Of a stretch of DNA of 64,000 bases, positions 3,952 through 64,000 are shown in pieces; positions within the stretch are counted from its first letter, which is position 1; each line of letters begins with the position of its first letter. Made by a program: the position numbers and the translations under genes. The stretch covers positions 124,001 to 188,000 of the forward strand of contig JAPDFW010000072.1 of NCBI GenBank assembly GCA_028826165.1, written 5' to 3'. Source of the DNA: Anaeramoeba ignava BMAN. Taxonomy: Eukaryota; Protista; Anaeramoebae. The notes beneath the pieces are model-generated. The model did not search any database. It saw only the letters and a list, made by a program, of their open reading frames with translations, and was not told the origin of the DNA.

Positions 3952-15291
<11,340 letters not shown>

Positions 15292-32673: not shown

Positions 32674-33258
32674 ATGACTGAAATTCAAGCAACAAAAGAA
32701 ATGTGTTATTTTTGTTTTGATACAATCCTCAGCAAATTTACCAAAGAAGAACCAAAAGGATATGAATTTAAAAAAGGGGTGAAATGTCCATTATTTGTAA
32801 CATGGAAAATCAAGAAAAAAGAAGATTATCATTTAAGAGGTTGTATTGGAACATTTCAAGACATGGAACTTAAAGAAGGACTTGAGAGCTTTGCACAAAA
32901 ATCCGCATTTTCTGATTGGCGGTTTCATCCGATTGAAGAAAAAGAAATTGAATCATTGAATTGTTCAGTTTCTTTATTAGTAAATTTTGAACAAGCAAAA
33001 AATTGTCTTGATTGGGAAGTTGGAAAGCATGGCATAAGAATAAAGTTTAAGGGATATAGTGGCACTTATCTGCCCGAAGTAGCTACAGAACAAGGTTGGG
33101 ATAAAGAGACTTCTTTGCGCCACTTGGTTCAAAAGGCTGGTTATCATGGTTCTTTTGATAATGAACTCATGGAATCTATTCAATTGACAAGATATCAATC
33201 TTCCAAAATTCATTCTACTTATGATGAATTTCTTAATTGGAAAAAATCAAGAAAATGA
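32674..33258 (+). CDS. AMMECR1: AMMECR1-family protein
   Basis: MCYFCFD, PLFVTWK, LRGCIGTF, CSVSLLVNFE, DWEVGKHGI, TYLPEVA.EQGW and LTRYQSSK. Confidence 0.95.
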   Translation: MTEIQATKEMCYFCFDTILSKFTKEEPKGYEFKKGVKCPLFVTWKIKKKEDYHLRGCIGTFQDMELKEGLESFAQKSAFSDWRFHPIEEKEIESLNCSVSLLVNFEQAKNCLDWEVGKHGIRIKFKGYSGTYLPEVATEQGWDKETSLRHLVQKAGYHGSFDNELMESIQLTRYQSSKIHSTYDEFLNWKKSRK

Positions 33259-37697: not shown

Positions 37698-39381
37698 TCA
37701 TAAATTTATTTGATTTTGAAAAATAATTTGAATTTCATCTTTAATTTGATTTGAATAAATCCAATATTCAAATATTTGAAATGATTTATTACTTAATTCA
37801 CTATAATCTGCAACTTTATTAGATTTATCATTTGTTACAGATAAAAACATTCCTCGATATAATTCACTTCTCATTATTAATATTAATTTAGGGAATTTAT
37901 ATTGTTTTTCTTTTCTTTCAATAATAAAATCTTTTTCATTTTCATTTAAATAAATTCTTTTTATTGTTTCTTCTATTTTTTCATTTGAATTTATAATTTC
38001 TTTAATTTCAAAATATAATATTGGATTTATAATTCTGTTTGAATAAATTATTTCAAATATTTGATTTGATTCTTTAATTGATTTTTTTGAAATAATTTCT
38101 TGAAGTTTTTCAATTTGATTTTGATTTTGATTTAATCTATATTTCAATATTAATTTATGAGCTTCAATTATTTCTCCATTTTCAGTTTTAAATGAAATAT
38201 CACAAAATTCTTTTCTTTCAAATAATTTTATCAAATCTTCTTCAAGATTGGAAAAAGGAGAAAAAGGAGAATAATAAAGAAATGATTTGTGATATCCACA
38301 AGAAATATGATAATTATAAATATTTTCATTAAATCTTAATTTAGGAAGTTCAATTTGAATTGGCACTTTATGATCTTTTGTATCTCCAGTTCCTAATTGA
38401 CCATAATAATTAGAACCAAATCCTATCAATTTTGAATTGGATGTTAAAATCAAATTGTGATAATATCCAACAGAAAAATCAAGAATATCATCATCATTTT
38501 CAAATAAAAATGATTTGATTTCAGTAAATTCATAAGTATTTCTATATTTGCCAAGTCCATTATATGGAAAATAACCACATGAATAAAGTTTTCTTTTTGG
38601 ATTTTGATCTTGATTTTCATTTTCAATCAACATTATTGACTGATAATAACTAGTTTGAATATCAATTATTTTGCCTTTTGGAATATTTTGGATTTTGGTT
38701 AATTTATGGATATTTGTTTCTTTTCTTGATTCTCCTAATCCAAGTTGACCATGATAATTGAATCCGCATCCAAATAATTCTTGAATTGAATTTAAAAGAA
38801 AAACACAACTTGAAGTATCTCCTGAAAATATTTTAGAAACATTTTTCATCATTAAAATTGGTTTTTGTGTATCATTAAGTGTTTCAGAATAAAAACCAAG
38901 TTGACCAGTGTCATTTGAACCAATTCCATAAGCATTTTGATTTGAAGTTAATAAGTAAATTGAACTAGCTCCAGAAACAATATCTTCGAATTATTCTATC
39001 ATTTGTATCTTCAATTAATGATGAAATATTGATAAATTCATTTGGATTTTCTGGATAAATATCTTCTCCTTTGGCAAATACATTTCCTTCTTTTGTTAAA
39101 ATAGCTTCGTTTTGATAACCAACAGTTACTTTTTGAATATTTTCTTCAATTTGGATTTTTGAAGGATTTTGTTTTGAATCTTTTAAATATTCTATTGCTT
39201 TTCCGTTTTCAAAAAGGAAAATTGTTGAAAATATTCCTGATGAAATTTGTTTAATTTCATTTTCATTTTCATTTTCATTTTCATTTTCAAATTTAAATTG
39301 AATTGGTTTTGTTATTATTTTTCGTTCATTTTTGAAAAGAATTGGATCGTCATTTTGACCAAAAAATAAACAATCATTCAT
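37698..39381 (-). CDS. RCC1-repeat + BTB protein, tandem copy 1 (frameshift near 38985; C-terminus eroded, possible pseudogene)
   Basis: RCC1 blades GCGFNYHGQLGLG, GFGSNYYGQLGTGD; BTB-like FCDISF...AHKLILKYR. The last approx. 35 codons are decayed relative to the paralogs. Confidence 0.8.
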
Positions 39382-39688
39382 TTTTGAAAAGAAAAAAATG
39401 AAAAAATGATTTTGGAATTTTTAATTTTAATTTTAATTTTAATTTTAATTTTAATTTTAATTTTAATTTTAATTTTAATTTTAATTTTGATTTTGATTTT
39501 AATTTTAATTTTGATTTTAATTTTGATTTTAATTTTAATTTTGATTTTAATTTTAATTTTAATTTTAATTTTAATTTTAATTTTAAATTTTAATTTTAAT
39601 TTTGATTTTAATTTTAATTTTAAATTTTAATTTTAATTTTATTTTTAATTTTAATTTTAATTTTAATTTTAATTTTTAATTTTAGATT

Positions 39689-41474
39689 TTAATTTTGATT
39701 TTGATTATTAAATTTGTTAATTAATAAATCAAATAAATTTGGATTTGTTTGATTTAATTGAAAATAATCAATTCCAATTTGAATTTCATCAATTATTTCT
39801 TGTGTAATTTGAATTTCATCTTTAATTTGATTTGAATAAATCCAATATTCAAATATTTGAAATGATTTATTACTTAATTCACTATAATCTGTAACTTTAT
39901 TTGATTTATCTTCAGTTACAGATAAAAACATTCCTCGATATAATTCACTTCTCATTATTAATATTAATTTTGGAAATTTATATTGTTTTTCTTTTCTTTC
40001 AATTATAAAATCTTTTTCATTTTCATTTTCACTTTCATTTAAATAAATTCTTTTCATTGTTTCTTCAATTTTTTCATTTGAATTTATAATTTCTTTAATT
40101 TCAGAATATAATTTTGGATTTATTATTCTGTTTGAATAAATCATTTCAAATATTTGATTTGATTCTTTAATTGATTTTTTTGAAATAATTTCTTGAAGTT
40201 TTTCAAATTCATTTTGATTTTCATTTTCATTTAATCTATATTTCAATATTAATTTATGAGCTTTGATTATTTCTCCATTTTCGGTTTTAAATGAAATGTC
40301 ACAAAATTCTTTTCTTTTAAATAATTTTATCAAATCTTCTTCAAGATTGGAAAAAGAAGAAAGAAAAGGAGAATAATAAATAAATGAACTTTCTTCTCCA
40401 CAATAAACATGATAATTAGAAATATCTTCATTAAATCTTAATTTAGGAAGTTCAATTTGAATAGGAGTTTGTGGAGATTTTGTATCTTCAGTTCCTAATT
40501 TACCAAAAGAATTAGCACCAAATCCGATTAATTTCCCTTTTGTTGTTAAAATCAAATTATGATTACTTCCAACAGAAAAATCAAGAATATTATCATCATT
40601 TTCAAATAAAGATGATTTGATTTCAGTAAATTCATAAACATCATTATTTTTGCCAAGTCCATTAAATGGATTATAACCACATGAATAAAGTTTTCTTTTT
40701 GGATTTTGATTTTGATTTTCATCTTCAATCAACATTACTGAATGAAAAAATCCAAATTGAATATCAATTATTTTGCCTTTTGGAATATTTTGGATTTTGG
40801 TTAATTTTTGGATTTGTGTTCCTCTTCTTAATTTTCCTAATCCAAGTTGACCTTCAGAATTGTTTCCAGATCCAAATAATTCTTGATTTGAATTTAAAAG
40901 GATAACGCATTTTGTGTTATTTCCTGAAAATATTTTAGAAACATTTTTCATCATTAAAATTGGTTTTTCTGTTTTTCGAAGTTTTCCACAATCAAGACCA
41001 AGTTCACTATAAGAATTTGAACCAATTCCATAAGCATTTTGATTTGAAGTTAATAAATAAACTGATTCCCTTGCACAAATAATATCTTTAATTATTCTAT
41101 CATTTGTATCTTCAATTAATGATGAAATATTGATAAATTCTTTTGGATTATTTGGATTAAATATCTGTTCCTTTAGCAAATACATTTCCTTCTATTGTTA
41201 AAATAGCTTCGTTTTGCAAACCAACAGTTACTTTTTGAATATTTTCAATTTGGATTTTTGAAGGATTTTGGTTTGAATATTCTTCTTGTAAGTATTCTAT
41301 TGCTTTTCCATTTTTAAAAAGGAAAATTGTTCCAAAATTTCCTGATGAAATTTGTTTAATTTGTTTTTGATTTTCATTTTCAAATTTAAATTGAGTTGGT
41401 TTTTTTATTGAATCTGGTTCATTTTTAATAAGTTTTGGATTTGAATTTCTTCCAGAAACAAAAATATCATTCAT
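39689..41474 (-). CDS. RCC1-repeat + BTB protein, tandem copy 2 (frameshift near 41165)
   Basis: Same architecture, with complete C-terminus IDYFQLNQTNPNLFDLLINKF. Confidence 0.85.
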
Positions 41475-41626
41475 TTTGAAAAGAAAAAAATGAAAAAATG
41501 AAAAATGAAAAATGATTTTTAATTTTAATTTTGATTTTAATTTTAATTTTAATTTTAATTTTAATTTTAATTTTAATTTTAATTTTAATTTTAATTTTAA
41601 TTTTAATTTTAATTTTAATTTTAATT

Positions 41627-43417
41627 TTAATTTTGATTATTAAATTTGTTAATTAATAAATCAAATAAATTTGGATATGTTTGATTTAATTGAAAATAAT
41701 CAATTCCTATTTGAATTTCATCAATAATTTCTTGTGTAATTTGAATTTCATCTTTAATTTGATTTGAATAAATCCAATATTCAAATATTTGAAATGATTT
41801 ATTACTTAATTCACTATAATCTGTAACTTTATTAGATTTATCTTCTGTAACAGATAAAAACATTCCTCGATATAATTCACTTCTCATTATTAATATTAAT
41901 TTTAGGAAATTTATATTGTTTTTCTTTTCTTTCAATAATAAAATCTTTTTCATTTTCATTTTCATTTAAATAAATTCTTTTTATTGTTTCTTCAATCATT
42001 TCATTTGAATTTATAATTTCTTTAATTTCTGAATATAATTTTGGATTTATTTTGGAATTGTTTGAATAAATCATTTCAAATATCTGATTTGATTCTTTAA
42101 TTGATTTTTTTGAAATAATTTCTTGAAGTTTTTCAAATTTTGATTTTGATTTTCATTTAATCTATATTTCAATATTAATTTATGAGCTTCAATTATTTCT
42201 CCATTTTCGGTTTTAAATGAAATATCACAAAATTCTTTTCTTCTAAATAATTTTATCAAATCTTCTTCAAGATTGGAAAAAGAAGAAAGAAAAGGAGAAT
42301 AATAAATAAATGATTTTTCATATCCACAAGAAATATGGTAATTAGAAATATCTTCATTAAATCTTAATTCAGGAAGTTCAATTTGAATTGGGATTGATTG
42401 ATCATTTGTATCTCCAGTTCCTAATTGACCATAATAATTATTTCCAAATACTATTAGTTTCGTATTGGAAGTTAAAACCAAAGTATGTTGATATCCAACA
42501 GAAAAATCAAGAATATTATTATCATTTTCAAATAAAGATGATTTGATTTCGGTAAGTTCATCAATATCTCCATTTTTGCCAAGTCCATTATATTCATATC
42601 TTCCACATGAATAAAGTTTTCTTTTTGGGTTTTGATTTTCATTTTCATTCTCAATCAGCATTATTGAATGATATCTTCCACATTGAATATCAATTATTTT
42701 GCCTTTTGGAATATTTTGGATTTTAGTTAATTTTTTGATTTTTAGTTTTTTTCTTTTTGATTTTCCTAATCCAAGTTGACCATAATAATTATTTCCGCAT
42801 CCAAATAATTCTTGATTTGAATTTAAAAGAAAAACAGAATATGAAGAATTTCCTGAAAATATTTTAGAAACATTTTTCATCATTAAAATTGGTTTTTCTG
42901 TTTCTTTAAGTGTTTCAGTATCAAAACCAAGTTGACCCCAATGATTAGAACCAATTCCATAAGCATTTTGATTTGAAGTTAATAAGTAAATTGAAAATCT
43001 TGAACAAACAACATCTTGAATTATTCTATCATTTTTATCTTCAATTAATGATGAAATATTGATAAATTCATTTGGATTATTTGGATTAATATCTTTTCCT
43101 TTGGCAAATACATTTCCTTCTATTGTTAAAATAGCTTCATTTCGATAACCAACAGTTACTTTTTGAATATTTTCTTCAATTTGGATTTTTGAAGGATTTT
43201 GTTTTGAATCTTCTTGATTTAAATATTCTATTGCTTTTCCATTTTTAAAAAGGAGAATTGTTCCAAAATTTCCTGATGAAATTTGTTTAATTTGTTTTTC
43301 ATTTTCATTTTCATTTTCATTTTCAAATTTAAATTGAATTGGTTTTTTTATTTCATCTGGTTCATTTTTGAAAAGAATTGGATATTGATTTGAACCAAAA
43401 AATATAATTTCATTCAT
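41627..43417 (-). CDS. RCC1-repeat + BTB protein, tandem copy 3 (frameshifts near 42140 and 41900)
   Basis: Same architecture across ORFs 42071-43417, 41877-42074 and 41627-41965. Confidence 0.85.
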
Positions 43418-46958: not shown

Positions 46959-49719
46959 CTAATTTTGAAAAAAATCAAAAGGAGTTTGATTTAGATTCAT
47001 TTCATTTTCTAAAATGGAATCATCTTCATTAATTTTTTTTTCATCTTTTGAATCATTTTTTAAATCATTTTTTAAATCATTTTTTTCAAATTGAAAATCT
47101 GATTCTAATTTTTGTTTTGGAAGAGAATTTTGGTCAATAAGATCACTTCTTAATGGAATATGAGAAATCACAGGAGTTTGAAACAAATGAAAATCTGATT
47201 GGCCATCTGAATATATTTCATTCCCAAAATTCTCATTCTCACTATCTTCTATTAAATCATGTTGATTTGGATTTAAAAGAGAATCCGGCAAAATTGGATC
47301 ATTAGTTTCAATTAGATTACTATCAAAGGGGCTTTCTCCATGAAGCTGGTAATTCTCTTGGTAATTCATTGTTGGTTGGTCATCCACGATGGAGTCAATA
47401 AATCCCCTTTGCTGATCATAATAAAGATCTGCTGAATTTTCATTTGAAGAATCGACTGATTGATTTTCAGTATTTTTTAAATATAAAAGTTTCGAATTTG
47501 GATCAAAAAGGAACTTTTTCCCAATCGAGTTTTTGGATATCAAAAACCTTCCAAACTGTGCAAAAGCGCTATGTCTTCCGTTTGGATGATAAACATTTGC
47601 ATAACAAGAATAAATTTCAGGATGAATTTTTCTAGCAAAACCAATCACTTCTTTTCTTGTTGCTGGGCGCCCAATATATTTCAATGTTTCCACAACATAG
47701 AACCATCCTGGCTGTCTATTCGGGCAATTTTTCACGAGTAATTCTTGCAGTTTTTGCTTGTAAGTTTTGTTGTTATTTTGCTGTTGAAAATATTCTTCTA
47801 AATTATTGATCTCCCATTCTTGAAGATAATAAAGATGATAATGTTTATCATAACGAACCACTGATGATCTCTTGCTATGCAGAAGAAAACTTCCAAATGG
47901 ATGATGTGCCTTTTTTTCTCCGTATGCTTCTACATAGCATTCCCATAATTTATTGTTTTTTTCTTTTGCTTTTTGTAGTATTTCTGATCGTGTTGATGGT
48001 TTTCCTAATTCTTTTAATGCTTCACTTGCATATTCCCATCCTTTTTTCCTATTAGGTAGCTTTTTTGTTAATATTTGTGTTATTTTAGATGGTCCTCCTT
48101 TTACTTCAGATAAATCTTGTGATTCAATCCATTTTTCTGCTGCTTTTTTCATTTTTTCTTTTTTGAGTCGTTCTTTTTTTGCTTCTTTTTCTGCTTGAAT
48201 TCTATATTCTTCATTAACTTCATTTTCATTTTCATTTTCATTTTGAATTTGATTTTGATTTTCATTTTGAATATTTTGAAGTTGAATTTGATTTAAATTT
48301 TGAATTTCATTTTGAATTTCATTTTCATTTTGATTTTCATTTTCATTTTGATTTTCATTTTGAATATTTAGATTTTCATTTTCATTTTGAATATTTAGAT
48401 TTTCATTTTCATTGAAATCACTATAAAAATCTAAATCTTCTATTTTAGAATACCATTTAGTTAAACTATAAACTCGTTGTTTTGGATGGAATGTAATTGA
48501 AGAATGATTATGTCTTAAAAGAAAACTACCAAAAATTATATGACCTTGTTTTGTTCCAAAAATTTCTTCATAACATTTCCATAAATCAGGAAACAATTCT
48601 TTAGCCTTTTCTGTAATTTCAGCCCTTGTTGAAGGACGATTAATATTTTCCAGTACAATCTGAGTATATTGATAGCCTGTTAATTTATTACTTCCAATTC
48701 GAGTATTGATAAGCTTTTTTAATCTTTTTCCTGGTGTTTTTTCATCAGGAGATAAATTTTCATTTGATTTTCGTTTTAAATTTCTTGATGTAGATGAATC
48801 AAATAAAGGATTTTCTAGTGATCCAAAAATCAGTTGATTTAATTTGGGATCATCAAAAAAATCTGAATTTTGTTCATAAAATTCCTCATTTTGAAGTGGA
48901 TCTTCTTGATCCTCATTTTTTTCTTGTTCGTTAAAATTTTCCAAATCAATTTCAGGATTTAAATTCATATTTTCATCTTTTTCTTGAATATAATTAATTT
49001 CTTCTGGAATTTCAAAATCATTTTTAGTTAAATATAATTGATTATTTTGATTATTTTCATTTTGATTATTTGGAATAAGTGTAAAAGGTTGTGATGAAAA
49101 ATATCCTTGATTTTGATTTTGATTTTTATTTTGATTTTGAATTATATTTTGATTTTGATTTTGATTTTGATTTTGATTTTGATTTTGATTTTGATTTTGA
49201 TTTTGATTTTGATTTTGATTTTGATTTTGATTTTGATTTTGATTTTGATTTTGATTTTGAATTATATTTTGATTTTGATTTTGATTTTTATTTTGATTTT
49301 GATTTTGATTTTGATTTTGATTTTGATTTTGATTTTGATTTTGATTTTGATTTTGATTTTGATTTTGATTTTGATTTTGATTTTGATTTTGATTTTGGTT
49401 TTGGTTTTGAATTTGATTTTGATTTTGATTTTCTTGGTTTTGAAATGGTATTTGATAAGTTAATTTTCCTCTTTGTGGGTTATTTGAAAAATTATTATTG
49501 TTTTCAACTGAATAAGGAAATTTAAATTCAAAATTTCTTTCTTGATTAAAAATTGGTGAAAATGAATCTAATAGTGAATTTTGTAGTTGTGATGAATATT
49601 GATTTGAATAATTGGAAATTGAAGGGATATGAAGAATATTTGGAATAGAATTTTTTTGGGTTTTTAAATTATTATTTTCATTTTCATTTGTGTTTTAAAT
49701 TTAAATTATTATTATTCAT
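46959..49719 (-). CDS. Uncharacterised protein with three copies of a approx. 70-aa helical (winged-helix-like) domain and Q/N-rich linkers
   Basis: ORF 46959-48968 has 3 repeats of G(Y/W)xY...L..IGRP(S/A)TR.E(I/V)...A......W.CY...(Y/F)...FG.FL(L/I). Coding-like sequence continues upstream through a (QN)n tract to approx. 49719; the start is uncertain. Confidence 0.65.
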
Positions 49720-49808: not shown

Positions 49809-52800
49809 ATGAATCAAGATAACCAGTAAAATTAAAATTAAAATTAAAATTAAAATTCATTTATAAAATTAAAATTAAAATTCATTTATAAAATTATAAA
49901 TTAAAAGAAAATTCTTAAATCTTATTTATTTTTTATCATTTATTTTCTTAATTTAATTAAAAACAAAAAGACAAAATTTTCAACTAGACAATAAAGATAC
50001 TTCAAAAATAGCAAAAATATTAATTAATTTTAGGAAAGAAAATGAAACAGAAAAACAAAGTAAATCAAATTTCATTTTTAAAAAACAAAATTCATTTTTT
50101 TTTTCTTTTTTTAACAAAAATAAAAATAATAAATTTAAAAAGAACTTGATCCAAAAAGCAAAGATGAATTTGTTATTGAAACTTTAGTTTTATTTTTGGA
50201 TTTATTTTCTAAAATTGAAGATATCATTGAAAATTCTCTTTTTCTTTTACAAAAACTTATTATAACTGAAAACGGTAAAGAGAAAATGTTTTTTGTTTTT
50301 CTTTTTTTAATTTGAATTAATTTAAATCAAATTAGAAAATCAAAAAGAAAACCAAACTTTAAAAGGAATTGATTTAATATTGAAATCAATGATTAATTTT
50401 CCTGATAATAAAGAAATTCAAAGACAAGCTTGTTCTCTTTTAAGTGTTCTTTCTTTAGATGAACGTACAAAAAAATTAATCAAATCAATGAAATCCAAAA
50501 CAAAAATCAAATAAAACAAAAATAAAATAAAATTATTTTTAATCAATTAGAAAACAAAATTGAAATCAAAAATTTGAATGGAGTTGAATTGATCCAAAAA
50601 GTGATTTCAAAATTTCCTGATGATCAAATTCTTATAAATTCTGCATCTAAAACATTATCTAATATTTCCATTGATAATTCAAGTAAAATCATTTTAATTC
50701 AAAAACCATTTTAATTCAAATTTAAATTTTGAAAAAAAAATTAAGAGGAAAAAAAAGAACTAGAAAGTTTGAAAAAAGAATATGAAACATCTCAAACCGT
50801 ATTTCATTTTCCAAAAATTCAAACCAAAAAAAAAAAAAAAGAATCAACAATTTATTCATCTTCCCAAATTTATATCATTTTTTTTCTACTTTTACTTCTT
50901 TTTTATTTAATTCATTTTCTCAACAATTTAGAAGAAGATGTTTGTTTTTTATTTTTTTACAAATTCCAAATTTTCATATTTAATATTTTAATATTTAAAT
51001 AGAAAGGATCTTTGATACATTTTTTAGCAACTAAACAACCTATTAATTTTGGTCTTCTAAAGAATTTATCAGAAGATAGTCAGGTTTTAAATCAGCAAGA
51101 TGTATTGCTTTGATTAAATCTATTTCAAAATCCAAAATCTTATTAAATATTTATTTTCATTAATAAAATAAATAGGATGTAAAAAATGAAAAAATTAAAA
51201 CAACTTTTTAAAATTTAATCAACTTGATTTTGCTTAAAAATATTAAATAGGGTGTAAAAAAATAATTTCCCAATTTTAATCATTTTCAAAATTTATGAAA
51301 AACTCTTGTTTAGGATGTAAATATTTTTATTTTTATTTTTATTTTTATTATTACTAAATGAGGTTTAATATTTGAAATTGGAAATTGTTGTTCTATTCAA
51401 AAAAAAAGTGGTCTCCAGTTCATTACTTATGCCAAAATGAATCAATCACATTTGAAATTATTGATTTTTTGGTTAAGAAAGGAGCAAATTTTAATTTAAG
51501 TGGAGTAAATATTTTTTTAATTGATTTCAAATTGATTAATTTATTCATTTTCTTTTCTCAATATTTTTAATAATAGAGAGTAATAATTTCTCTAATAAAT
51601 AAAATGATTATCCATTTTTTTTTTAATTAGTATTTAAATAAATTAATAAATTAGGTTGTAAATTTTCTTTGTGAAAATAAAGTTTTGATCTTGTTTTGGG
51701 AAAAATTATATATATATATATATATTTATATATTTAAAAACATCTAGCAAGTAAAATATCAAAGAATAATACATCATTTTTTTTTTACATTCATTATTGG
51801 AATTATTTTTGGAAATGATCATTTTAAACAATTTTAGAAAGTAAAAAAATTTGAAAAAATTTCTCAAAACATTTTATTTTTTCAAAATTCTCAAAAAAAA
51901 AACCAAATTTAGAAAGTAAAAAATTGTTAATTTCCTTTCCAAAAAATAAAGTGATTAAAAATAATATTTTCTTTGAAAAAAATAGTATGTAAAATATAGA
52001 AAAGAAAACAATATTATATTATAGAATAATAAATTTTATATTAAAAGTAACAATCCTAAATCTATTTTTTTTCAAATCAAAATAGTTTGTAAAATTTTCA
52101 TTTCTTTTCCAAATTTAATATATTTTTTTTTCATTCATATTCCTTTTTAAAATTTTTTTTTATTATTATTTAAAAATCAGGATGTAAAAACATTTTGAAT
52201 TAATTTAAATTTATGGATAAAAGATTTAACAAACAAAAAATTAGACTGTAAAAAAACATTTCTTTTTTTTTAATTTTTTTGCAAGAAATTTAATAAAGAA
52301 AATGATCATTTGAAAAAAAACAAAGTTTGTAAAAAAGATTTCCTTTAATTATTTCCACAAATTATTAATTGTTAATTTTTTTATAATAATAAAATAAATT
52401 ACTCCAAAAAAAAAAAGGATGTAAAGAAATAAAAATTTTTAATTTTTCAATGAAATTAATTCCTTTTTCTTAAAAAAAAAAAAGTGGACACCATTACATG
52501 AATTATGTAAAAACAAATCAATTACAGTAGAAATGATTCAATTATTAGTAAATAATGGGGCTGATTTTCATATTCAATCTGTACTTTAAATATAAATCCA
52601 TAATATATATTTTTGAGATTAAATTTTTACAAATCAAATTTCTTTTCTATTCTTTTTAATAGTCAGTAAATTATAATTTTATTTTTTGTTATTTTTGTTC
52701 TGAAAATTTTTCTAAATTGATATGGAATAGATGGTGAATAAAATAAATTAAATCAAATTTAAATTCAATTAAATCAAATTTTCAATTATTTATTAGAAAG

Positions 52801-54593
52801 TAAAAATTATATTATCATTTAAATAATATTTATTATTTTCAAATTCTAATGGATTTATTATTATTTATTTATTTATTTATTTAAATAGCCTGTAAATAAT
52901 TTCAAAATTTGTTTTATGAATCAATTCAATTATAAAATTTCTTGTTATTTATCGAAAGGATGTAAATAGTTAAACTTTTTCTTTTGAAGGAAATTTTCTA
53001 ATTCAATTTCAATCAAAAATCATCTTAATTTCCAAAATCAATAGAAAGTAATCCATCCTTAAATCAGAAACCAAAGAAAATAAATCAAAATTTTTTTAAT
53101 CATCTTTCATGCAAATTAATAGGATGTAAATTAATAAATAAATTTTCAAAATTTGAGACTTAAAAAAAATATAATTTGGAAATAGTTTGTAAATTTTAGG
53201 TTATTTTCAATAATTTAGTAAAACAATTTATTAACAAAAAAATAAAAGAGTGTAAAATATTATTTAATTGGAATAAATTGAGAATAAAGTCGAATCAAAT
53301 CTAAAATATGAAAAAAAAAGGCTGTAAATAATTAAATTAGAAATAAATTATGAAATGGCTTATTAAACAAATTATTTAATTTAAAGAGTGTAAATTTGAA
53401 AAATAATGAATTTTATTTTGTTTTACTTTTAAAATCAATTCTAAATTAAAATTAAACAGCCAGTAAATTTACCTTATTATCTAAAAAAAAACATGAATAT
53501 TAAATGAAAAAAAATTATTTTAATCAATAGAGAGTAAAAAATATTAAACAAAAATAGAAAAGAAATCAATTAATCTTAAATCAAAAAAAAAAAAAACATA
53601 ATTGAATAAAATTAGTTTGTAAATGATAGAAATTATTTGAAATTAACATTTTTCTAAGTTTTATTTTCTGAATTTTGAATTTTTAGGCAAGTCCTTTTCA
53701 TAATTTATGTGGAAACACATCAATCACAGCAGATATGATTAAAATTTTGATTCAAAAAGGAATTGATTTCAATTTACAACTTGTAAATAAATAAATGATT
53801 TTTTTTTTCAAAATGAAAAAGTGGAATAAATAATTAATTTTAAATAACAACAATAAGGTTGTAAAATTTTTTTTTTATAAAAGAATAAAGTTTGGATATT
53901 GAATATTGAATAATATTATTTAGGATGTAAATAAATTAAAAAGGGAAAATTATTGATAGATTAAATAATAAAATATTTTTTGGATTATTGAAACAAAAGT
54001 CTGTAAATAATTTAGATTATGATTAAATAAAATGAATGATTTAAGTTTTTTTTTTCTTTTGTTAAAATTTGAATAGGAAGTAAATTATTATTAATTTTTT
54101 AACTTTTAATTTTTAATTTTTTAATTTTTTGGAATAAAATAGTGGGTAAATATCATTTTATTTTATTTTCAATTTTGATTTTATTAATTATTGGAATAGA
54201 TTGTAAATTTTCTTTTTAGGAAATAAAATTTAAATTATTTTTATTGTGATTAATTAAATTAATTAGAGAGTAAATTAAAAATTAAAATTGAAAAATTAAA
54301 AATTAAAAACTAATTTTCATTCTTCAAAAGGGAGTAAATTTAATTTTAAATTTAATTTTAAATTGAATTTTAAATTAATCAAAAACAAAAATTACAAATA
54401 TTTTTAGCCAAGTCCATTATTTGTTCTTTGTCAAAATCCATCAATTACAGAAGAAATTATCAATTTAATTAAAACAACAAAAGCTGATTTTAATTTGAAG
54501 ATTGGAGATGATTGGTATATTGAGGATAAAAGTTATTCAAGAGGAACAAAACCAATTGATTTATTGAAGGATTCTTTGAAGAAATTGATTTAA
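49809..54593 (+). CDS. Gene A: ARM-like repeats + 5 ankyrin repeats whose inter-repeat loops are encoded by 36 single-codon micro-exons
   Basis: Exons 49809-49825, 49971-50059, 50143-50274, 50336-50464, 50551-50682 (ARM-like [26 protein letters not shown]) and 50746-50798. ANK exons 51003-51101, 51409-51504 ([10 protein letters not shown]), 52485-52580 ([10 protein letters not shown]), 53687-53782 ([10 protein letters not shown]) and 54408-54593 (stop TAA). All are GT-AG and frame-consistent; ANK exons are phase 0. Confidence 0.85.
51176..51316 (+). other. Gene A micro-exon array 1: three 3-nt exons (D,G,D)
   Basis: ag|GAT|gt 51176, ag|GGT|gt 51251, ag|GAT|gt 51314. Confidence 0.8.
51577..52420 (+). 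other. Gene A micro-exon array 2: eleven 3-nt exons (R,V,Q,K,K,Y,F,D,T,F,D)
   Basis: AG|NNN|GTAA with codons starting at 51577, 51655, 51748, 51838, 51913, 51986, 52086, 52181, 52245, 52326 and 52418. Confidence 0.8.
52663..53618 (+). other. Gene A micro-exon array 3: fourteen 3-nt exons (S,M,K,P,D,K,D,F,S,A,S,P,R,F)
   Basis: AG|NNN|GT with codons starting at 52663, 52731, 52797, 52889, 52959, 53045, 53123, 53186, 53249, 53321, 53387, 53460, 53531 and 53616. Confidence 0.8.
53858..54333 (+). other. Gene A micro-exon array 4: eight 3-nt exons (V,D,S,E,W,I,R,G)
   Basis: AG|NNN|GTAA with codons starting at 53858, 53924, 54000, 54077, 54143, 54200, 54267 and 54331. Confidence 0.8.
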
Positions 54594-54795
54594 AAATTCC
54601 ACTTTTTTCTTTTTAAATCAATTCCACTTTTTTTTTTCAAATCAATTTTACTTCGATTTAAGAATAAAACAACAAATTTCAAACAAAATTTTGATTTTGA
54701 TTTTGATTTTGATTTTGAATTCTTTATTCTTAAAAGAATTGAAAAAAAATTGAATTGAATTGAAAATTGAATTGAAAAATTGAAAAAGAATTTTG

Positions 54796-57700
54796 TTAAA
54801 CCAATTTTTTGAGGTTTTCTTTTAATAAATCTTTTGGTGTCTTTGATGAAACTATAGTTCTTCCAATTCTCCACATTCCTTGAGTTTTCGAATAAAAATT
54901 AGCATTAGTTTCCTTCAGTAATTTTATCATATCTTCGTTAACTGAACGATTGTTACAAAGAAAATGTAATGGTGTTAACTAAAAATAATATAAAAATAAT
55001 ATAAAAATAATATAAAAATAATAATTATTTTTTTTTGATTGATTTTCTATATTTTTATTTTTAAATTACTCCCTAATTTAAAAGAGAAAAAGAAAATTAT
55101 TAAAAAGAAAAATCAATTTATGAAATTTTAATTCATTTAAATTTACTTCCTAATTTAATGTAAAAAAAATTTAAATTAAAATTAAAATTAAAATTAAAAA
55201 GAAAAATGTCTTTTGGGAATTTACTCTCTATTTCATTTATTCCAAAAAAAAATAATAATAAAAATAAAAATAAAAATAAAAATAAAAATAAAAATAAAAA
55301 TTTTTCACTTTCTAAATGTTTGAATTTTAATAAATATTTTTATAAATAACAATAATAAAAATTAAACTTGATAAATTTACATCCTTCTACAATTATAGAA
55401 AACAGAAAAAAAAACAGTTTTGTTTTTGTTTGAGTTATTATTGAATATTTCCTTTTTTTGGAAAAATTAATTTACTTCCTATTAAAAAATTTTTTTTAAA
55501 TTTAAAAAGAAAAAGGAAAAAGGAAAAAGGAAAGAAAATAAAGATTTAATTTATTTTTTATATTTACGGTCTATTTATTGAGAAAATTAAATAAATTTTA
55601 AATTTTATATAAAATAAAAAAGAAAAATTTATACCATTTTTAAATTAAAATTAAGTCCTTTTTCAATCAAAAGTTTGAGAATATCTGTTGTAATAGAAAT
55701 ATTGCCGCATAATTCATGAAGAGGAGAAAACTAATCAATAAAAAAAAAATAATCAATAAAAAATCAATAAATTTAAATTTAAAAAAAATTTACCCACTAT
55801 TTTGGATTATAAATTATTTTCAATTTCCAAAATAAAAAGTTGATTTTTAAAAAATTTTTTTCAATTTACAGTCTATTTCATCAAATTTTATGAATAAAAA
55901 ATCATTTCAAAAAAAAATGTATAAAAATTTATTGATCAATTCTTTACATGCTATTTATTAATAAATTTTAAATTAAATTTAATTTGAAATGAAAAAAAAA
56001 AAAAATTTTACTTTCTAAAGAAATGAGAAAGAATTATTAAATTGGATTTATTTGATTTATTTTTGAAAATTTACCATTTGAATATGAAAATTTGCTTTTG
56101 TTTTTTCCAAGATTAATTCAACTATTTCCTTTGTAATTGATTTATTTCTGCATAAATCATGAAGTGGTGTCCACTTTTTATTATTTTTATTTTTTAAAAA
56201 AATTTAATAAAGAAATGATTTTAATTGTTTCTTTTTTTTTTGGATTACAAACTATGAAATTTTAAATTTTGAGAGAATAAAAACATTTTTTAAGATCAAA
56301 AAGAGGGAAATTTCTTTTTATTTTTGAAAAAAAAATGTATTACATACTATTTTGGAAATGAAATATAAAAGGATATTTTTTTTACTTTCAATTAATGAAA
56401 AAAATTGTTTCTTTTTATTTTTATTTTTCTTACATCCTATTTTATGTAATTATTTATAAAGGAAAGATGAAAGTTTAATAAATATTTTCTGAATTTATTT
56501 TTTACATTCTATTTGAATGAAATTAAATTTCCAAAAAAAAAAAAATAATAAATAATTAAGATTGATATGAAAAAATTTCTATTTTACTGACTAAAGAAAT
56601 TCGAAAAAAAAAAGTGTAATCAAAAAGGAAGTTTTTTTTTTAAATGAATTTGTTGGAAAAAAAAATATTTTCTCAAAAAGAATAATAATTACATACTATA
56701 TTAAAAATAAGTTAATTTTCTATAATGGTTTGATAAATATTCTTGTTATTTACAAGCTAAATATCATTTAAATTAAAAATTATTATTTAGAATTCCAAAT
56801 AATTTTATTTCTCTTTTATAAAAATTACATACTAATTTAAAGAATTTTTAATAATGGAAATTAAAACAAAAAAAAGATTTATTGTTTAGTTTTTACTTTC
56901 TATTATTTTTTTTTTCAAAAAAAAAAAACTAATTTAATCATTTTCTTCTTTTGTTTAAAATATTAGATCAAAATATACTCCATTTAAATTGAAATTGGAA
57001 TTATTCTTAGCAAGTAATTCAATATGTGAGTAAGTAATATTGAGGTTTCTGCAAAAATAATGAACTGGTGACCACTTTAAATAATATATTTTATTTTATT
57101 TTTTATTTTTACTTTTTTTTTCAACAAAAAATTAATTAATTAATTTATTACGTGCTAATTTATTTTGATAAAAATTATTTTGATAAATTTTATTTTGATA
57201 AAATTTACAGACTATTTTTAATAAATAAAAAATCAGAATATAAATTTGTTTGGTTTTTTGTTTTTTTGGTTTTTACTTGCTATTTATTTTTTTGAAAAAT
57301 AATTCATTCAATTTTGGGAAATATTAATATAAATATGATTATGATTATTTAAGCAAAAAAAATACATCTTTTTGATTTAAATCAGCTCCTGATTCAATAA
57401 AATATTGAAGTATATCAATATCAAGTGAAGGTTGTGTTGCAAAAAAATGAAATGTTGTTGATTTCTAATTTTGTTTTTGATCATTAGAATGAAAAAATCA
57501 ATATAAAAAAATCATTTGGAAAGAAAGATTTTTTTTTTAAAATCAAAAATAAATACATTATGCTGTTTTGTTTTTTGGGAAATCAAATCAAAAAAAAAAG
57601 AAGGAAAGATAATATGGTTAATATTATTTTGTTTTAGAATTGTTAAAAATAATTAAATTACCATTTCGGAAGCATCAAAATCTTTTTTCAAGTTTTCTAA

Positions 57701-60700
57701 TTTTTTGGGTAGAATATCGGATATGATTGAATTAGAATCTGGTTTTGGGGAAGGAATTTTATTTTCTATGTTATTTTTGGGGGATTTGACTCTATTGAGG
57801 TTGCTTTGTTTTTGGGTTCTTGAGAGGCTTTTAGGTTTGTTGGTTGTTTCTTGATTTTCTTGATTATTTATTATTTATTATTATTTATTATTTATTATTT
57901 ATTATTATTATTTATTATTTATTATTATTTATTATTATTTATTATTATTTATTATTTATTATTATTTGATTTTGTGAATGAGAATTACCTGTCGATTGAT
58001 TATTTAATTGGAATTGATTCATAACAGGTTTTTGATTTGGTGAATGGAATTGATTTGATTGATTAGTCTTATTTGGGCTTATGGTTCGATTTGGTGAATG
58101 GAATTGATTCATAACAGGTTTTTGATTTGATGATTGGAATTGATTTGATTGATTAGTCTTATTTGGACTTATGGTTCGATTTGGTGAATGGAATTGATTT
58201 GATTGATTAGTCTTATTTGGGCTTATGGTTCGATTTGGTGAATGGAATTGATTCATAACAGGTTTTTGATTTGGTGATTGTAATTGATTTGATTGATTAG
58301 TCTTATTTGGACTTATGGTTCGATTTGGTGAATGTGGTTTCCTTGGATCTAAATTTTAATTTTAAATTTAATTTAAATTTTAAATTTATAAATTTAAATT
58401 TTATAAATTTATTTACCTGAAGGTTTTAATTTTTTCAAACATTGAGTAAATTGGTCTAAAGAACATCTTTCTTTTGGATTAAAATCCCATCCTTTTTTAA
58501 TTAATTCTGATAATTCTTTTGGGAAATTATTTGTAAATTCTGGTCTATTTCCATTCATAACAGTCATAGTAACTTGAATAAAATTAAGATTATCAAATGG
58601 TTCTTTTTTAGCAAAAATAGAATATAAAATCATTGCTAAACTATAAATATCACATGAAGCATCATATTCATTTCCTTCATTAAATAGTTCAGGAGCAGAA
58701 TAACGAAATGAACCAGTAGTTTTAGTGACTTTCATTGTATGTTCTTTAACTCTTGAAACTCCAAAATCTGAAATTTTTGGTTTATTACTAAAAATCAAGA
58801 TATTTTCAGGTTTTAAATCTCGATGAATAATAGATTTAGAATGTAGAAATTTTATTCCTTCAATAATATCAAGTGAGAATCTTATTTGTTCATCAAATGT
58901 TAAATTTATAATCTTGTTTTTTAAATCACCTTCTAAAGCATAATCCATCACAATTCCAAGCATACTATCCATTTCAACTATTCCATAAATTCTCACAATA
59001 GATGGATGATTTAATTTTGTTGCAAAGTTAATTTCATTATGAAATTCTTTTTTTGCTTTTTCATCATTTAAAATATTAAATTTCTTAATAACAACATCTT
59101 TTGATTTCCATTTTGCTTTGAATATTTGACATGTTTCTCCAATAGAAAATGGTTTTGATTCAATTTGTAATTCTTTTAACGGAATTGGTTTAATTTGTTC
59201 ATTTATTCCTAATTTTTAATTTTAATTTTGATTTTAATTTTAATTTTAATTTTAATTTTAAATTTAATTTTAATTTTAATTTTAATTTTAATTTTAATTT
59301 TAATTTTGATTTTGATTTGAATTTTAATTTTAATTTTAAATTTTGATTTTAAATTTAAATTTTAATTTTAATTTTAATTTTAATTTTAATTTTAATTTTT
59401 AATTTTAATTTTAATTTTGATTTTAAATTTGATTTTGATTTTTAATTTTAATTTTAATTTTGATTTTGATTTTAATTTTAATTTTAATTTTAATTTTAAT
59501 TTTAATTTTAATTTTAATTTTAATTTTAATTTTAATTTTAATTTTGATTTTAAATTTTGATTTTAATTTTAATTTTAATTTTAATTTTGATTTTAATTTT
59601 GATTTTAATTTTAATTTTTAATTTTAATTTTGATTTTAATTTTGATTTTGATTTTAATTTTAATTTTGATTTTAATTTTAATTTTAATTTTAATTTTAAT
59701 TTTTAATTTAAATTTTTAATTTTATAAATTTATTTACCTGAAGGTTTTAATTTTTTCAAACATTGAGTAAATTGATCTAAAGAACATCTTTCTTTTGGAT
59801 TAAAATCCCATCCTTTTTTAATTAATTCTGATAATTCTTTTGGGAAATTATTTGGGAATTCAGGTCTATTTCCATTCATAACAGTCATAGTAACTTGAAT
59901 AAAATTAAGATTATCAAATGGTTCTTTTTTAGCAAAAATAGAATATAAAATCATTGCTAAACTATAAATATCACATGAAGCATCATATTCATTTCCTTCA
60001 TTAAATAGTTCAGGAGCAGAATAACGAAATGAATCAGTACTTTTAGTAACTTTCATTGTATGTTCTTTAACTCTTGAAACTCCAAAATCTGAAATTTTTG
60101 GTTTATTACCAGAAATCAAGATATTTTCAGGTTTTAAATCTCGATGAATAATAGATTTAGAATGTAGAAATTTTATTCCTTCAATAATATCAAGTGAGAA
60201 TCTTTATTTGTTCATCAAATGTTAAATTTATAATCTTGTTTTTTAAATCACCTTCTCCAGCATAATCCATCACAATTCCAAGCATACTATCTATTTCAAC
60301 TATTCCATAAATTCTCACAATAGATGGATGATTTAATTTTGTTGCAAAGTTAATTTCATTATGAAATTCTTTTTTTGCTTTTTCATCATTTAAAATATTA
60401 AATCTCTTAATAACAACATCTTTTGATTTCCATTTTGCTTTGAATATTTGGCATGTTTCTCCAATAGAAAATGGTTTTGATTCAATTTGTAATTCTTTTA
60501 ACGGAATTGGTTTAATTTGTTCATTTATTCCTAAATTTTAATTTTTAATTTTAAATTTTGATTTTTAAATTTTGATTTTTAATTTTAATTTTAATTTTAA
60601 TTTTGATTTTAATTTTAATTTTAAATTTTAATTTTGATTTTAAATTTTAATTTTAATTTTAATTTTGATTTTAATTTTGATTTTAATTTTGATTTTAATT

Positions 60701-63005
60701 TTAATTTTAATTTTAATTTTGATTTTTAAATTTAAATTTTTAATTTTATAAATTTATTTACCTGAAGGTTTTAATTTTTTCAAACATTGAGTAAATTGAT
60801 CTAAAGAACATCTTTCTTTTGGATTAAAATTCCATCCTTTTTTAATTAATTCTGATAATTCTTTTGGGAAATTATTTGGGAATTCAGGTCTATTTCCATT
60901 CATAACAGTCATAGTAACTTGAATAAAATTAAGATTATCAAATGGTTCTTTTTTAGCAAAAATAGAATATAAAATCATTGCTAAACTATAAATATCACAT
61001 GAAGCATCATATTCATTTCCTTCATTAAATAGTTCAGGAGCAGAATAACGAAATGAATCAGTACTTTTAGTAACTTTCATTGTATGTTCTTTAACTCTTG
61101 AAACTCCAAAATCTGAAATTTTTGGTTTATTACTAAAAATCAAGATATTTTCAGGTTTTAAATCTCGATGAATAATAGATTTAGAATGTAGAAATTTTAT
61201 TCCTTCAATAATATCAAGTGAGAATCTTTATTTGTTCATCAAATGTTAAATTGTGCATTCTCTTTTTTAAATCACCTTCTAAAGCATAATCCATCACAAT
61301 TCCAAGCATACTATCCATTTCAACTATTCCATAAATTCTCACAATAGATGGATGATTTAATTTTGTTGCCAACTTGATTTCATTATGAAATTCTTTTTTT
61401 GCTTTTTCATCATTTAAAATATTAAATTTCTTAATAACAACATCTTTTGATTTCCATTTTGCTTTGAATATTTGGCATGTTTCTCCAATAAAAAATGGTT
61501 TTGATTCAATTTGTAATTCTTTTAACGGAATTGGTTTAATTTGTTCATTTATTCCTAATTTTTAATTTTAATTTTGATTTTAATTTTAATTTTAATTTTA
61601 ATTTTAATTTTAAATTTTGATTTTAATTTTGATTTTAATTTTGATTTTAATTTTAATTTTGATTTTAATTTTAATTTTAATTTTAATTTTAATTTTAAAT
61701 TTTAATTTTAATTTTGATTTTAATTTTAAATTTTTTAATTTTGATTTTAATTTTAATTTTTATTTTTTTAATTTTTAATTTTGATTTTGATTTTAATTTT
61801 AATTTTGATTTTAATTCTAAATTTTAAATTTAATTTTAATTTTATTTTGAATTTAAATTTTGATTTTAATTTAAATTTTAATTTAAATTTTAATTTTGAT
61901 TTTAATTTTGATTTTAATTTTAATTTTAATTTTAATTTAAATTTTAATTTTAAATTTAATTTTAATTATTAATTTTGATTCAAATTTTTAATTTTATAAA
62001 TTTATTTACCTGAAGGTTTTAATTTTTTCAAACATTCAATAAATTGATCTAAAGAACATTTTCTTTTGGATTAAAATTCCATCCTTTTTTAATTAATTCT
62101 GATAATTCTTTTGGGAAATTATTTGGGAATTCGGGTCTATTTCCATTCATAACAGTCATAGTAACTTGAATAAAATTAAGATCATCAAATGGTTCTTTTT
62201 TAGCAAAAATAGAATATAAAATCATTGCTAAACTATAAATATCACATGAAGTATCATATTCATTTCCTTCATTAAATAGTTCAGGAGCAGAATAACGAAA
62301 TGAATTAGTAGTTTTAGTAACTTTCATTGTATGTTCTCTAACTCTTGAAACTCCAAAATCTGAAATTTTTGGTTTATTACCAGAAATCAAGATATTTTCA
62401 GGTTTTAAATCTCGATGAATAATAGCATTAGAATGTAGAAATTTTATTCCTTCAATAATATCAAGTGAGAACTTTATTTGTTCATCAAATGTTAAATTGT
62501 GCATTCTCTTTTTTAAATCACCTTCTCCAGCATAATCCATCACAATTCCAAGCATACTATCCATTTCAACTATTCCATAAATTCTCACAATAGATGGATG
62601 ATCCAATTTCATTGCCAACTTGATTTCATTATGAAATTCTTTTTTTGCTTTTTCATTGTTTAAAATATTAAGTCTCTTAATAACAACATCTTTTGATTTC
62701 CATTTTGCTTTGAATATTTGGCATGTTTCTCCATTAGAAAATGGTTCGGGTTCAATTTGTAATTCTTTTAACGGAATTGCTGGAATAATTTCTTGGTTTG
62801 TTTGGTTTTTCAGTTTTTCCACTAATGATAATAATGCTCTGTTTGGAATTGGTCGAAAATCATCAAAAGAAGATCGGCAAAAAATACAACTGTTACTCTT
62901 TTTTAAACATGATTCACATATTGTATGTCCTTCTTGGCAAATGATCATCGGTTTTTTTAATTTTGAATAATTTTCAAAGCATTGTGGACAAATTTCTGGT
63001 TCCAT
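54796..63005 (-). CDS. Gene B: RING finger + four tandem protein-kinase (TKL-like) exons + S/P/N-rich linker + 5 ankyrin repeats with 23 single-codon micro-exons
   Basis: Exon 63005-62010 (RING CPQC...[11 protein letters not shown]...CIFC plus kinase 1), kinase exons 61554-60762, 60530-59738 and 59208-58417 ([18 protein letters not shown]), linker 58348-57662 and a 6-nt exon 57562-57557. ANK exons 57464-57366, 57074-56979, 56173-56075, 55730-55635 and 54978-54796 (stop). Single-base frame breaks near 62060, 61228, 60203 and in the AAT tract 57870-57960 make full continuity an inference. Confidence 0.75.
55070..55570 (-). other. Gene B micro-exon array 4: seven 3-nt exons (T,E,D,K,R,E,G)
   Basis: Lowest coordinates 55568, 55476, 55381, 55309, 55225, 55147 and 55070. 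Confidence 0.8.
55794..56014 (-). other. Gene B micro-exon array 3: four 3-nt exons (K,H,T,W)
   Basis: Lowest coordinates 56012, 55948, 55870 and 55794. Confidence 0.8.
56249..56899 (-). other. Gene B micro-exon array 2: nine 3-nt exons (K,Y,L,Y,S,N,D,Y,F)
   Basis: Lowest coordinates 56897, 56829, 56754, 56693, 56588, 56506, 56434, 56344 and 56249; all read TAG|NNN|GTAA on the minus strand. Confidence 0.8.
57152..57279 (-). other. Gene B micro-exon array 1: three 3-nt exons (Q,S,H)
   Basis: Plus-strand ac-NNN-ct at 57277-79 (CAA), 57209-11 (TCT) and 57152-54 (CAC). Confidence 0.8.
58005..58335 (-). repeat. Coding tandem repeat ([18 protein letters not shown] / NQxQSxNQKPVM) in the gene B linker
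   Basis: 54-nt and 36-nt units interleaved, about 4 and 3 copies; Ser-Pro rich. Confidence 0.85.
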
Positions 63006-63549
63006 TTGTAAAAAAAACAAAACAAAACAAAACAAAAATGAATTAAATGAGATAAAAAAAATGAAAAATGAAAAATGAAATTTAATTTTCCTTTTTTTCT
63101 TTTTTTTAATTTTAATTTTAATTTTTGATTTTAATTTTGATTTTAATTTTGATTTTGATTTTGATTTTAATTTTAATTTTAATTTTAATTTTAATTTTGA
63201 TTTTAATTTTAATTTTAATTTTAATTTTAATTTTATTTTTGATTTTAATTATAATTTTAATTTTGATTTTAATTTTGATTTTAATTTTGATTTTAATTTC
63301 AATTTTTGATTTTAATTTTGATTTTGATTTTATTTTTAATTATGATTTTAATTTTAATTTTTAATTTTAATTTTAATTTTAATTTTAATTTTAATTTTAA
63401 TTTTAATTTTAATTTTAATTTTAATTTTAATTTTATTTTTAATTTTAATTTTAATTTTAATTTTTAATTTTAATTTTAATTTTGATTTTAATTTTGATTT
63501 TAATTTTGATTTTGATTTTTAAATTTGATTTTAATTTTCTTTATTGATT

Positions 63550-64000
63550 TTAATTATTAAATTTGTTAATTAATAAATCAAATAAATTTGGATTTGTTTG
63601 ATTTAATTGAAAATAATCAATTCCAATTTGAATTTCATCAATTATTTCTTTTGTAATTTGAATTTCATCTTTAATTTGATTTGAATAAATCCAATATTCT
63701 AATATTTGAAATGATTTATTACTTAATTCACTATAATCTGTAACTTTATTAGATTTATCCTCAGTTACAGATAAAAACATTCCTCGATATAATTCACTTC
63801 TCATTATTAATATTAATTTAGGAAATTTATATTGTTTTTCATTTCTTTCAATAATAAAATCTTTTTCATTTTCATTTTCATTTAAATAAATTCTTTTCAT
63901 TGTTTCTTCAATTTTTTCATTTGAATTTATAATTTCTTTAATTTCAAAATATAATTTTGGATTTATTATTCTGTTTGAATAAATCATTTCAAATATTTGA
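63550..64000 (-). CDS. 3' part of another RCC1-BTB family gene (runs off the window)
   Basis: MIYSNRIINPKLY...RSELYRGMFLSVTED...FDLLINKFNN is near-identical to the C-termini of the 37.7-43.4 kb copies. Confidence 0.85.
   Translation of the reverse strand, partial: QIFEMIYSNRIINPKLYFEIKEIINSNEKIEETMKRIYLNENENEKDFIIERNEKQYKFPKLILIMRSELYRGMFLSVTEDKSNKVTDYSELSNKSFQILEYWIYSNQIKDEIQITKEIIDEIQIGIDYFQLNQTNPNLFDLLINKFNN

Follow-up and report, generated by a model that had tools for sequence, protein, structure and literature searches.

The very short micro-exons of animals and plants (3–15 nt; e.g. PMC7821500, PMC8831610) are spliceosomal, reach down to 3 nt, mostly preserve the reading frame, often encode surface loops and are routinely missed by annotation and spliced aligners. 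They are not known to occur other than singly or in small clusters between long introns. In recursive splicing, represented by the ratchet points of Drosophila and the RS-exons of vertebrates, intervals of tens of kilobases are removed stepwise through internal pairs of 3′ and 5′ splice sites, and a ratchet point is a juxtaposed AG and GT at which a 5′ splice site is regenerated and nothing is left behind. The micro-exon genes (MEGs) of Schistosoma contain runs of short symmetric exons that can be skipped without loss of frame and for which protein variants have been proposed; their exons measure 6–36 nt and encode the greater part of a secreted protein, and their variable splicing has been shown by cDNA. 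Dscam, which is invoked for the splice-based diversity of a binding surface, carries within one gene tandem arrays of homologous full-size exons that are mutually exclusive via RNA pairing. Introners and other tandemly multiplied introns represent many closely spaced, lineage-specific intron gains (PMC9860276). Here, we describe a locus of Anaeramoeba ignava BMAN (assembly GCA_028826165.1; 42.8 Mb) at which arrays of candidate exons of a single codon lie between exons that encode ankyrin repeats. The window analysed is a stretch of 64,000 nt (contig JAPDFW010000072.1, positions 124,001–188,000 of the forward strand), in which the region of interest, 51003–57464, comprises the 3′ halves of two convergent genes, A on the + strand and B on the − strand; positions are those of the window unless another locus is named.

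The units of these arrays would, like the very short exons of animals and plants, be spliceosomal and frame-preserving and lie in surface loops that annotation misses, but up to 14 of them follow one another, nearly all are 3 nt long, the introns are minimal and 23–36 units fall within one gene. With MEGs the locus shares runs of short symmetric exons with frame-safe skipping; however, the exons here measure 3 nt and occur only in the loops of an ankyrin scaffold, the repeat bodies are exons of 96–99 nt, the upstream regions are RING-kinase or ARM-like and the host proteins look cytosolic. No homology to MEGs is implied. The stepwise, sequential logic of recursive splicing may apply as well, but the intervals are of ~0.3–1.1 kb, AG-GT(A/G)A is not enriched, juxtaposed AG-GT sites of the recursive type are lacking and the 3 nt between the two sites would remain in the mRNA. 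As in Dscam, the arrays are in tandem within one gene; homologous alternatives, however, are not possible among single codons, and inclusion of the units together is what the present evidence favours. An introner-like burst is, by analogy, a plausible origin of the arrays, which likewise imply many closely spaced intron gains, but no signature of recognisable copies is found among the introns of genes A and B. Micro-exons are not mentioned in the Anaeramoeba genome paper, the intein paper or the A. pumila preprint, and literature searches, including full text, returned no account of micro-exons in Anaeramoeba and none of arrays of 3-nt exons; the layout appears to be undescribed in the searchable literature.

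The reading that we favour, and consider rather probable, is that the units are genuine one-codon spliceosomal exons, most of which are normally included in the message. The motif AG-N3-GT(A/G)A occurs 36 times on the + strand and never on the − strand in 51003–54600 (gene A); in 54800–57464 (gene B) it occurs 23 times on the − strand, and the two matches on the + strand are antisense and lie within an ankyrin exon. In gene order, the units form arrays of 3, 11, 14 and 8 in gene A and of 3, 9, 4 and 7 in gene B. An earlier interpretation made without database searches (the sequence-only reading) had reported these same counts, a switch in the strand of the motif together with that of the gene, and phase-0 ankyrin exons of 96–99 nt; the recount was identical, the strand counts confirm the switch and the exons are as described, with AG and GT at their borders. 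Other spacers (N0–N2 and N4–N8) give 0–5 matches each; the equal frequency of AG-N2-GT and AG-N4-GT that the sequence-only reading had named as refuting micro-exons is not seen; the five N1 matches look like AGA or AGT triplets read out of register. When the motif is left unfiltered, all 59 AG-NNN-GT matches between ankyrin exons still continue as GTAA (57) or GTGA (2), and the unit consensus is (A/T)AG-NNN-GTAAA. The strict motif, TAGNNNGTAA, is present 46 times in the window against 2.3 ± 1.6 times in dinucleotide shuffles, none of 100 of which reaches 46. The spacing from unit to unit is 57–105 nt, and every unit has an AG 3′ splice site before it, a GT 5′ splice site after it and introns of normal size on either side. 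The pattern is real, and chance falls far short of explaining it.

The composition and conservation of the triplets are those expected of coding sequence. None of the 59 is a stop, as the sequence-only reading had noted (P = 0.002 under intron base composition). In the family, whose statistics cover ~45 loci, one stop is found among 380 triplets where 26 are expected from position-specific base use, and this one is an antisense false match at 57029, the only place where TAA occurs; TGA is absent, while TAT (23), TAC (3) and TGG (11) are all used. The GC content by codon position is 0.42/0.36/0.085 in the triplets and 0.35/0.30/0.16 in the ankyrin exons, and that of the introns is 0.13. In paralog blocks, identity is 98.2% in the splice flanks, 95.8% in the triplets, 94.5% in the ankyrin exons and 92.8% in the introns, with gapped columns making up 6.4% of the introns and 0.6% of the triplets; this comparison, made on BLAST blocks of 85–92% identity (those below 85% being discarded as AT-rich low-complexity noise), is indicative only, as the paralog pairs are not independent. 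The closest pair, L035 and L040, is 97% identical in every sequence class and hence uninformative on selection. With reading frame, stops, codon-position composition and conservation each bearing a coding signature, the coding reading of the triplets is strongly supported by indirect evidence.

The position of the arrays matches a gap in the ankyrin repeat. The exons were searched singly with the Pfam ankyrin families PF00023 (Ank) and PF13606 (Ank_3), and among seven exons one scores above the Ank cut-off, three below it (E 7e-4 to 7e-3) and three give no match; by this match to a profile with a TPLH motif, a helix-turn-helix and ~33 residues, the repeats are assigned to these families. Positions 3–31 of the 33 in the Ank profile sit in the exon, from which the residues of the hairpin turn are absent; this bears out the earlier proposal that the insertion point is the ankyrin hairpin, and the predicted residues of the triplets fill profile positions 32–33/1–2. 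Three units is the commonest size of a clean array (19 of 38), and many three-unit arrays spell kdg, kde, rde, nyg or dgd, which are turns of the KDG type. Counted manually from the N of GAD.N to the T of TPLH, the junction holds seven residues with three triplets (as in NQQD+DGD+W-SPVH and NLEA+kdg+K-TPLN) and four without them, and the canonical hairpin length of ~7 residues is attained only when the triplets are included. The sole contiguous junction found in the family, ...NIKDDVGVTPL in paralog L042, has the same seven residues. Specific loop positions are also conserved. Among 17 arrays that precede an exon of the xTPLH(D/E/N)LC type, 11 end in D (background 13%) and 12 have Y or F as the penultimate unit (background 15%), a few of these rows being overlapping views of one gene. 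In loop 4, Gly closes seven of the ten arrays compared by eye, which come from genes A and B and from eight paralogs. The order of residues within loops is kept across paralogs, as in kikgdayfrg/kikenayfrg, ideqgqpg/ideegqpg and tksnen/tksnien/tkfdien.

The introns between the units of genes A and B measure 54–102 nt, start with GT and end with AG, and the median within arrays across the family is 71 nt. For the annotated introns of A. ignava the published mode is 76 nt, the median 102 nt and the maximum 4168 nt (PMC11550330, supplement). Since the array introns match this mode, each interval would be an ordinary intron for A. ignava. GTAA forms the 5′ splice site of 57 of the 59 micro-exons but of only three of the eight ankyrin exons (p = 1e-4), a bias that is expected if the site relies on intronic pairing, the exonic bases being free to vary. 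AG-N0-GT(A/G)A is not found on the gene strand of either gene (0–1 matches overall), and a GT at the start of the triplet is seen in only two units of the 59 (GTT in both). Spliceosomes usually recognise introns of this size across the intron itself, and, by general knowledge from other eukaryotes, an exon of 3 nt probably cannot accommodate a 3′ splice-site complex on its upstream side together with U1 on its downstream side, so that neighbouring introns would probably be removed in turn. In the mechanism that we propose, the body of each repeat (Pfam Ank 3–31) would be encoded by one phase-0 exon of 96–99 nt, and the residues of the inter-repeat hairpin would be supplied one by one by 3-nt exons set between short GT-AG introns (~55–105 nt). 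Splice-site recognition would span each intron singly (intron definition), and removal would proceed sequentially, as a ratchet resembling recursive splicing in which one codon stays in the message at each step. The resulting protein would carry hairpins of three residues (canonical) or, at particular junctions, fingers of 7–14 residues. Arrays would evolve by the gain or loss of single units, each event shifting the length of a loop by one residue.

The same architecture extends well beyond the two genes. With one ankyrin exon as the query, 121 matches are obtained in the genome; about 20 of the 30 loci listed, genes A and B being among the 30, contain 9–32 units per 3 kb on the gene strand, with other spacers at background. 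Parsed gene by gene, the paralogs follow a constant order of ankyrin exon, array and ankyrin exon. Genome-wide, with N2 and N4 spacers as the controls that the sequence-only reading had suggested, TAGNNNGTAAA (TAGN3GTAAA) has 2597 matches, compared with 645 of the N2 form and 361 of the N4 form. Among the matches listed, additional dense, periodic runs of TAGNNNGTAAA, with a spacing of ~65–80 nt, are seen at C1:409309–413053 (~40 units), 942330–942793, 1058077–1058584 and 1796394–1797770. A different class of match consists of isolated, near-identical copies of one ankyrin exon with one or two micro-exons nearby (L014–L018, L023 and L024, on C42, C25, C57, C79, C51, C108 and C142); these may be gene fragments on a dispersed repeat.

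Changes in arrays can be followed among close paralogs. When three of them are aligned, an Ile unit (TAG-ATT-GTAA) is present in L040 and L020; L035 has lost the AG there, its two introns being merged and its loop one residue shorter. The same three paralogs share a 6-nt micro-exon, TAG-GGAGGA-GTAAAA, inside a 3-nt array (L035:8170–9060, with the paralogs on C71 and C20). The earlier statement that the exon is always 3 nt thus stands for genes A and B and fails for these three paralogs; 3 nt is a rule, not a law. An origin of the arrays by recent duplication was considered for genes A and B and rejected: their introns are as alike as shuffled sequences (mean pairwise local score 14.42 in both; adjacent introns 15.2), and adjacent identical triplets occur at the level of chance (24 pairs against 23.8 expected).

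The uniformly strong splice sites, the canonical three-unit hairpins and the conserved positions favour mostly constitutive inclusion of the predicted exons. Several points weigh against such routine inclusion. The NCBI models are without the triplets: P0012 (KAJ5067461.1), P0155 and in part P0151 join ankyrin exons directly, which gives 32-residue repeats near the canonical length, so that a fully skipped isoform would not be structurally absurd. The loops of distant paralogs differ widely, so that much of each long array is under weak constraint. The paralogs compared are not independent in the phylogenetic sense, and the limit that a 3-nt exon sets on two splicing complexes is general knowledge from other eukaryotes and not from this organism. 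Protein searches gave only NCBI genome-annotation models and no transcript-derived proteins: the last exon of gene A had no match, the ankyrin part of P0012 retrieved two further A. ignava proteins (NCBI genome models) and three unrelated ankyrin proteins, and an exact look-up placed the related proteins in single-member clusters at both NCBI and UniRef.

In the alternative put forward in the sequence-only reading, the micro-exons would be real but included in a combinatorial or stochastic manner, and the variable subset in each transcript would let one gene yield many ankyrin modules of differing loop length and sequence, with up to 2^36 patterns for gene A. We regard this alternative as possible but unlikely. 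Because any skipped subset keeps the frame, such isoforms would be free of premature stops; the skipping of one unit would create an intron of ~150 nt, which is within the annotated range (median 102 nt, longest 4168 nt), and the long loops vary strongly among paralogs. Sequence change in the ankyrin exons is, moreover, as rapid as in the introns or more so (81% versus 89% identity between L034 and L037; 94.5% versus 92.8% in the blocks), which hints at diversifying pressure on the module. The lower conservation of the ankyrin exons than of the surrounding introns between L034 and L037 (on C61 and C128) could be due to diversifying selection on the repeat bodies or to patchy gene conversion there. 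However, the splice sites are uniformly strong, the loop order and specific positions are conserved, and the three-unit arrays are canonical only if all three units are included. The functional extension of this alternative is that the arrays act as a diversity generator, stochastic or regulated skipping giving each module hairpin fingers of varied length and sequence; a variable binding surface would thereby arise, with the DNA unchanged, on recognition modules attached to RING-kinase or ARM-like regions; in our judgement this is rather unlikely.

Alternatively, the triplets might be absent from the mRNA altogether, each interval of ~0.3–1.1 kb being one long intron and the units being relics of intron multiplication or aids to stepwise removal. 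The direct joining of ankyrin exons in models P0012 and P0155 agrees with this view, and a process that copies an intron together with 3 nt could be enough to account for the constant spacing of 3 nt. The public models are, however, unreliable in these regions: P0155, P0013 and P0017 run into an intron and then stop, and P0151 skips three arrays and replaces the fourth by intron read-through. The earlier prediction that standard gene finders would miss the units is borne out by models that either skip the triplets or enter introns. Two of the models P0013, P0017, P0151 and P0155 are named 'palmitoyltransferase', and nothing in their sequences suggests this name. Untranslated triplets would also have to avoid stops (no real stop against 26 expected), display the codon-position GC of coding sequence, spell KDG-type turns and be more conserved than the introns around them, and the juxtaposed AG-GT needed for recursive splicing of zero length is absent. 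We therefore consider this explanation improbable. An extremely AT-rich genome might produce such arrays by chance or through low complexity (the window is 80–85% A+T, ~82% overall, with abundant simple repeats), but this explanation is virtually untenable, the shuffles and the spacer controls having refuted it, since TAGNNNGTAA far exceeds its expectation, only a spacer of 3 is enriched, the motif switches strand with the gene and the architecture recurs at ~20 paralog loci.

If the triplets are read as constitutively included codons, as we favour, the two genes can be parsed in full. Each contains five ankyrin-type exons, every one in phase 0 with AG and GT at its borders; the first four are of 96 or 99 nt, and the fifth is longer and includes a tail. 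The arrays between them are placed by the motif. In gene A, all on the + strand, ankyrin-like exon 1 (51003–51101; 99 nt, open frame, TAG/GTATTG borders) ends in NQQD and has no Pfam match on its own. Array A1 follows with three putative single-codon exons, D G D, at 51176–78, 51251–53 and 51314–16, which together with the flanking exons would give NQQD-DGD-WSPVH, the canonical length of an ankyrin hairpin. Ankyrin exon 2 (51409–51504; 96 nt) matches Ank_3 at profile positions 3–29 with E = 0.0012, under the curated cut-off, and is followed by array A2 (51577–52420), in which 11 units separated by introns of 61–97 nt would encode R V Q K K Y F D T F D. Ankyrin exon 3 (52485–52580; 96 nt) scores 25.2 bits against Ank (cut-off 21.1), covering positions 3–31 of 33, and 24.5 bits against Ank_3 (cut-off 22.3). 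Array A3 (52663–53618) has 14 units, S M K P D K D F S A S P R F, and leads to ankyrin exon 4 (53687–53782; 96 nt), with an Ank_3 match at E = 0.0007 that is again under the curated cut-off. The eight units of array A4 (53858–54333), V D S E W I R G, end with Gly before x-SPL, comparable to G-x-TPLH. The last exon (54408–54593) carries the fifth ankyrin-like repeat and the C-terminal tail, has no Pfam match on its own and terminates with TAA at 54591–54593.

Gene B is read from the − strand, and its features are given here in gene order. Ankyrin-like exon 1 (57366–57464; 99 nt, phase 0) precedes array B1 (57152–57279), whose three units would encode Q S H. Ankyrin exon 2 (56979–57074; 96 nt, phase 0) is followed by the nine units of array B2 (56249–56899), K Y L Y S N D Y F, and ankyrin exon 3 (56075–56173; 99 nt), which matches Ank with E = 0.0015, under the curated cut-off, by the four units of array B3 (55794–56014), K H T W. 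After ankyrin exon 4 (55635–55730; 96 nt, phase 0), the seven units of array B4 (55070–55570), T E D K R E G, place a last Gly before L-TPLH. The last exon (54796–54978) contains the fifth ankyrin-like repeat and a tail, without a Pfam match on its own, and ends in TAA at 54796–54798.

Upstream of the ankyrin module, gene B has a linker exon and then a kinase open reading frame (ORF) that belongs to a tandem set of RING-kinase genes. Paralog model P0012 has the corresponding order RING-kinase-linker-ankyrin (Ank_2, 63 bits). The tandem set comprises four kinase copies with a common motif at 58409–63035 (−), and the ankyrin module of gene B continues from the last copy only; an ORF upstream in this set (62049–63035, −) begins with a Cys-rich, RING-like stretch resembling that of P0012. 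In gene A, ARM-like exons lie upstream of the ankyrin module, as they do in P0151. Nothing resembling a signal peptide was seen at the N-termini of related public models, inspected by eye with no prediction tool run. The description of the products as receptors in the sequence-only reading finds no support in these RING-kinase-ankyrin and ARM-like contexts. Elsewhere in the window, tandem ORFs combining RCC1-like and BTB-like parts, with near-identical C-terminal halves in their translations, lie at 37698–43417 and 63550–63987 (−), and simple-repeat tracts that mimic ORFs (IYLF, NEKQ, FNLE, ILIL and DF) are found at 6668–7227, 14148–15291, 19971–21273, 24219–24614, 30724–32677, 49091–49525 and 57870–57970.

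If transcripts confirm the arrays, they would represent the densest packing of introns and exons known to us, with 23–36 one-codon exons per gene and 2597 occurrences of TAGNNNGTAAA in a genome of 43 Mb. Public annotation would then be wrong at many loci, with missing loops and truncated models, and the mean intron length reported for the organism would probably be inflated. Exons of this kind would challenge ideas on the minimum size of an exon that a spliceosome can handle, and would provide a natural system for obligatory sequential splicing; the idea of splice-based diversification is, for its part, a directly testable hypothesis. For the evolution of the ankyrin family in A. ignava, the arrays would point to a mode of intron gain that adds units of a codon plus an intron, through which the loops of a repeat protein could grow or shrink by one residue at a time.

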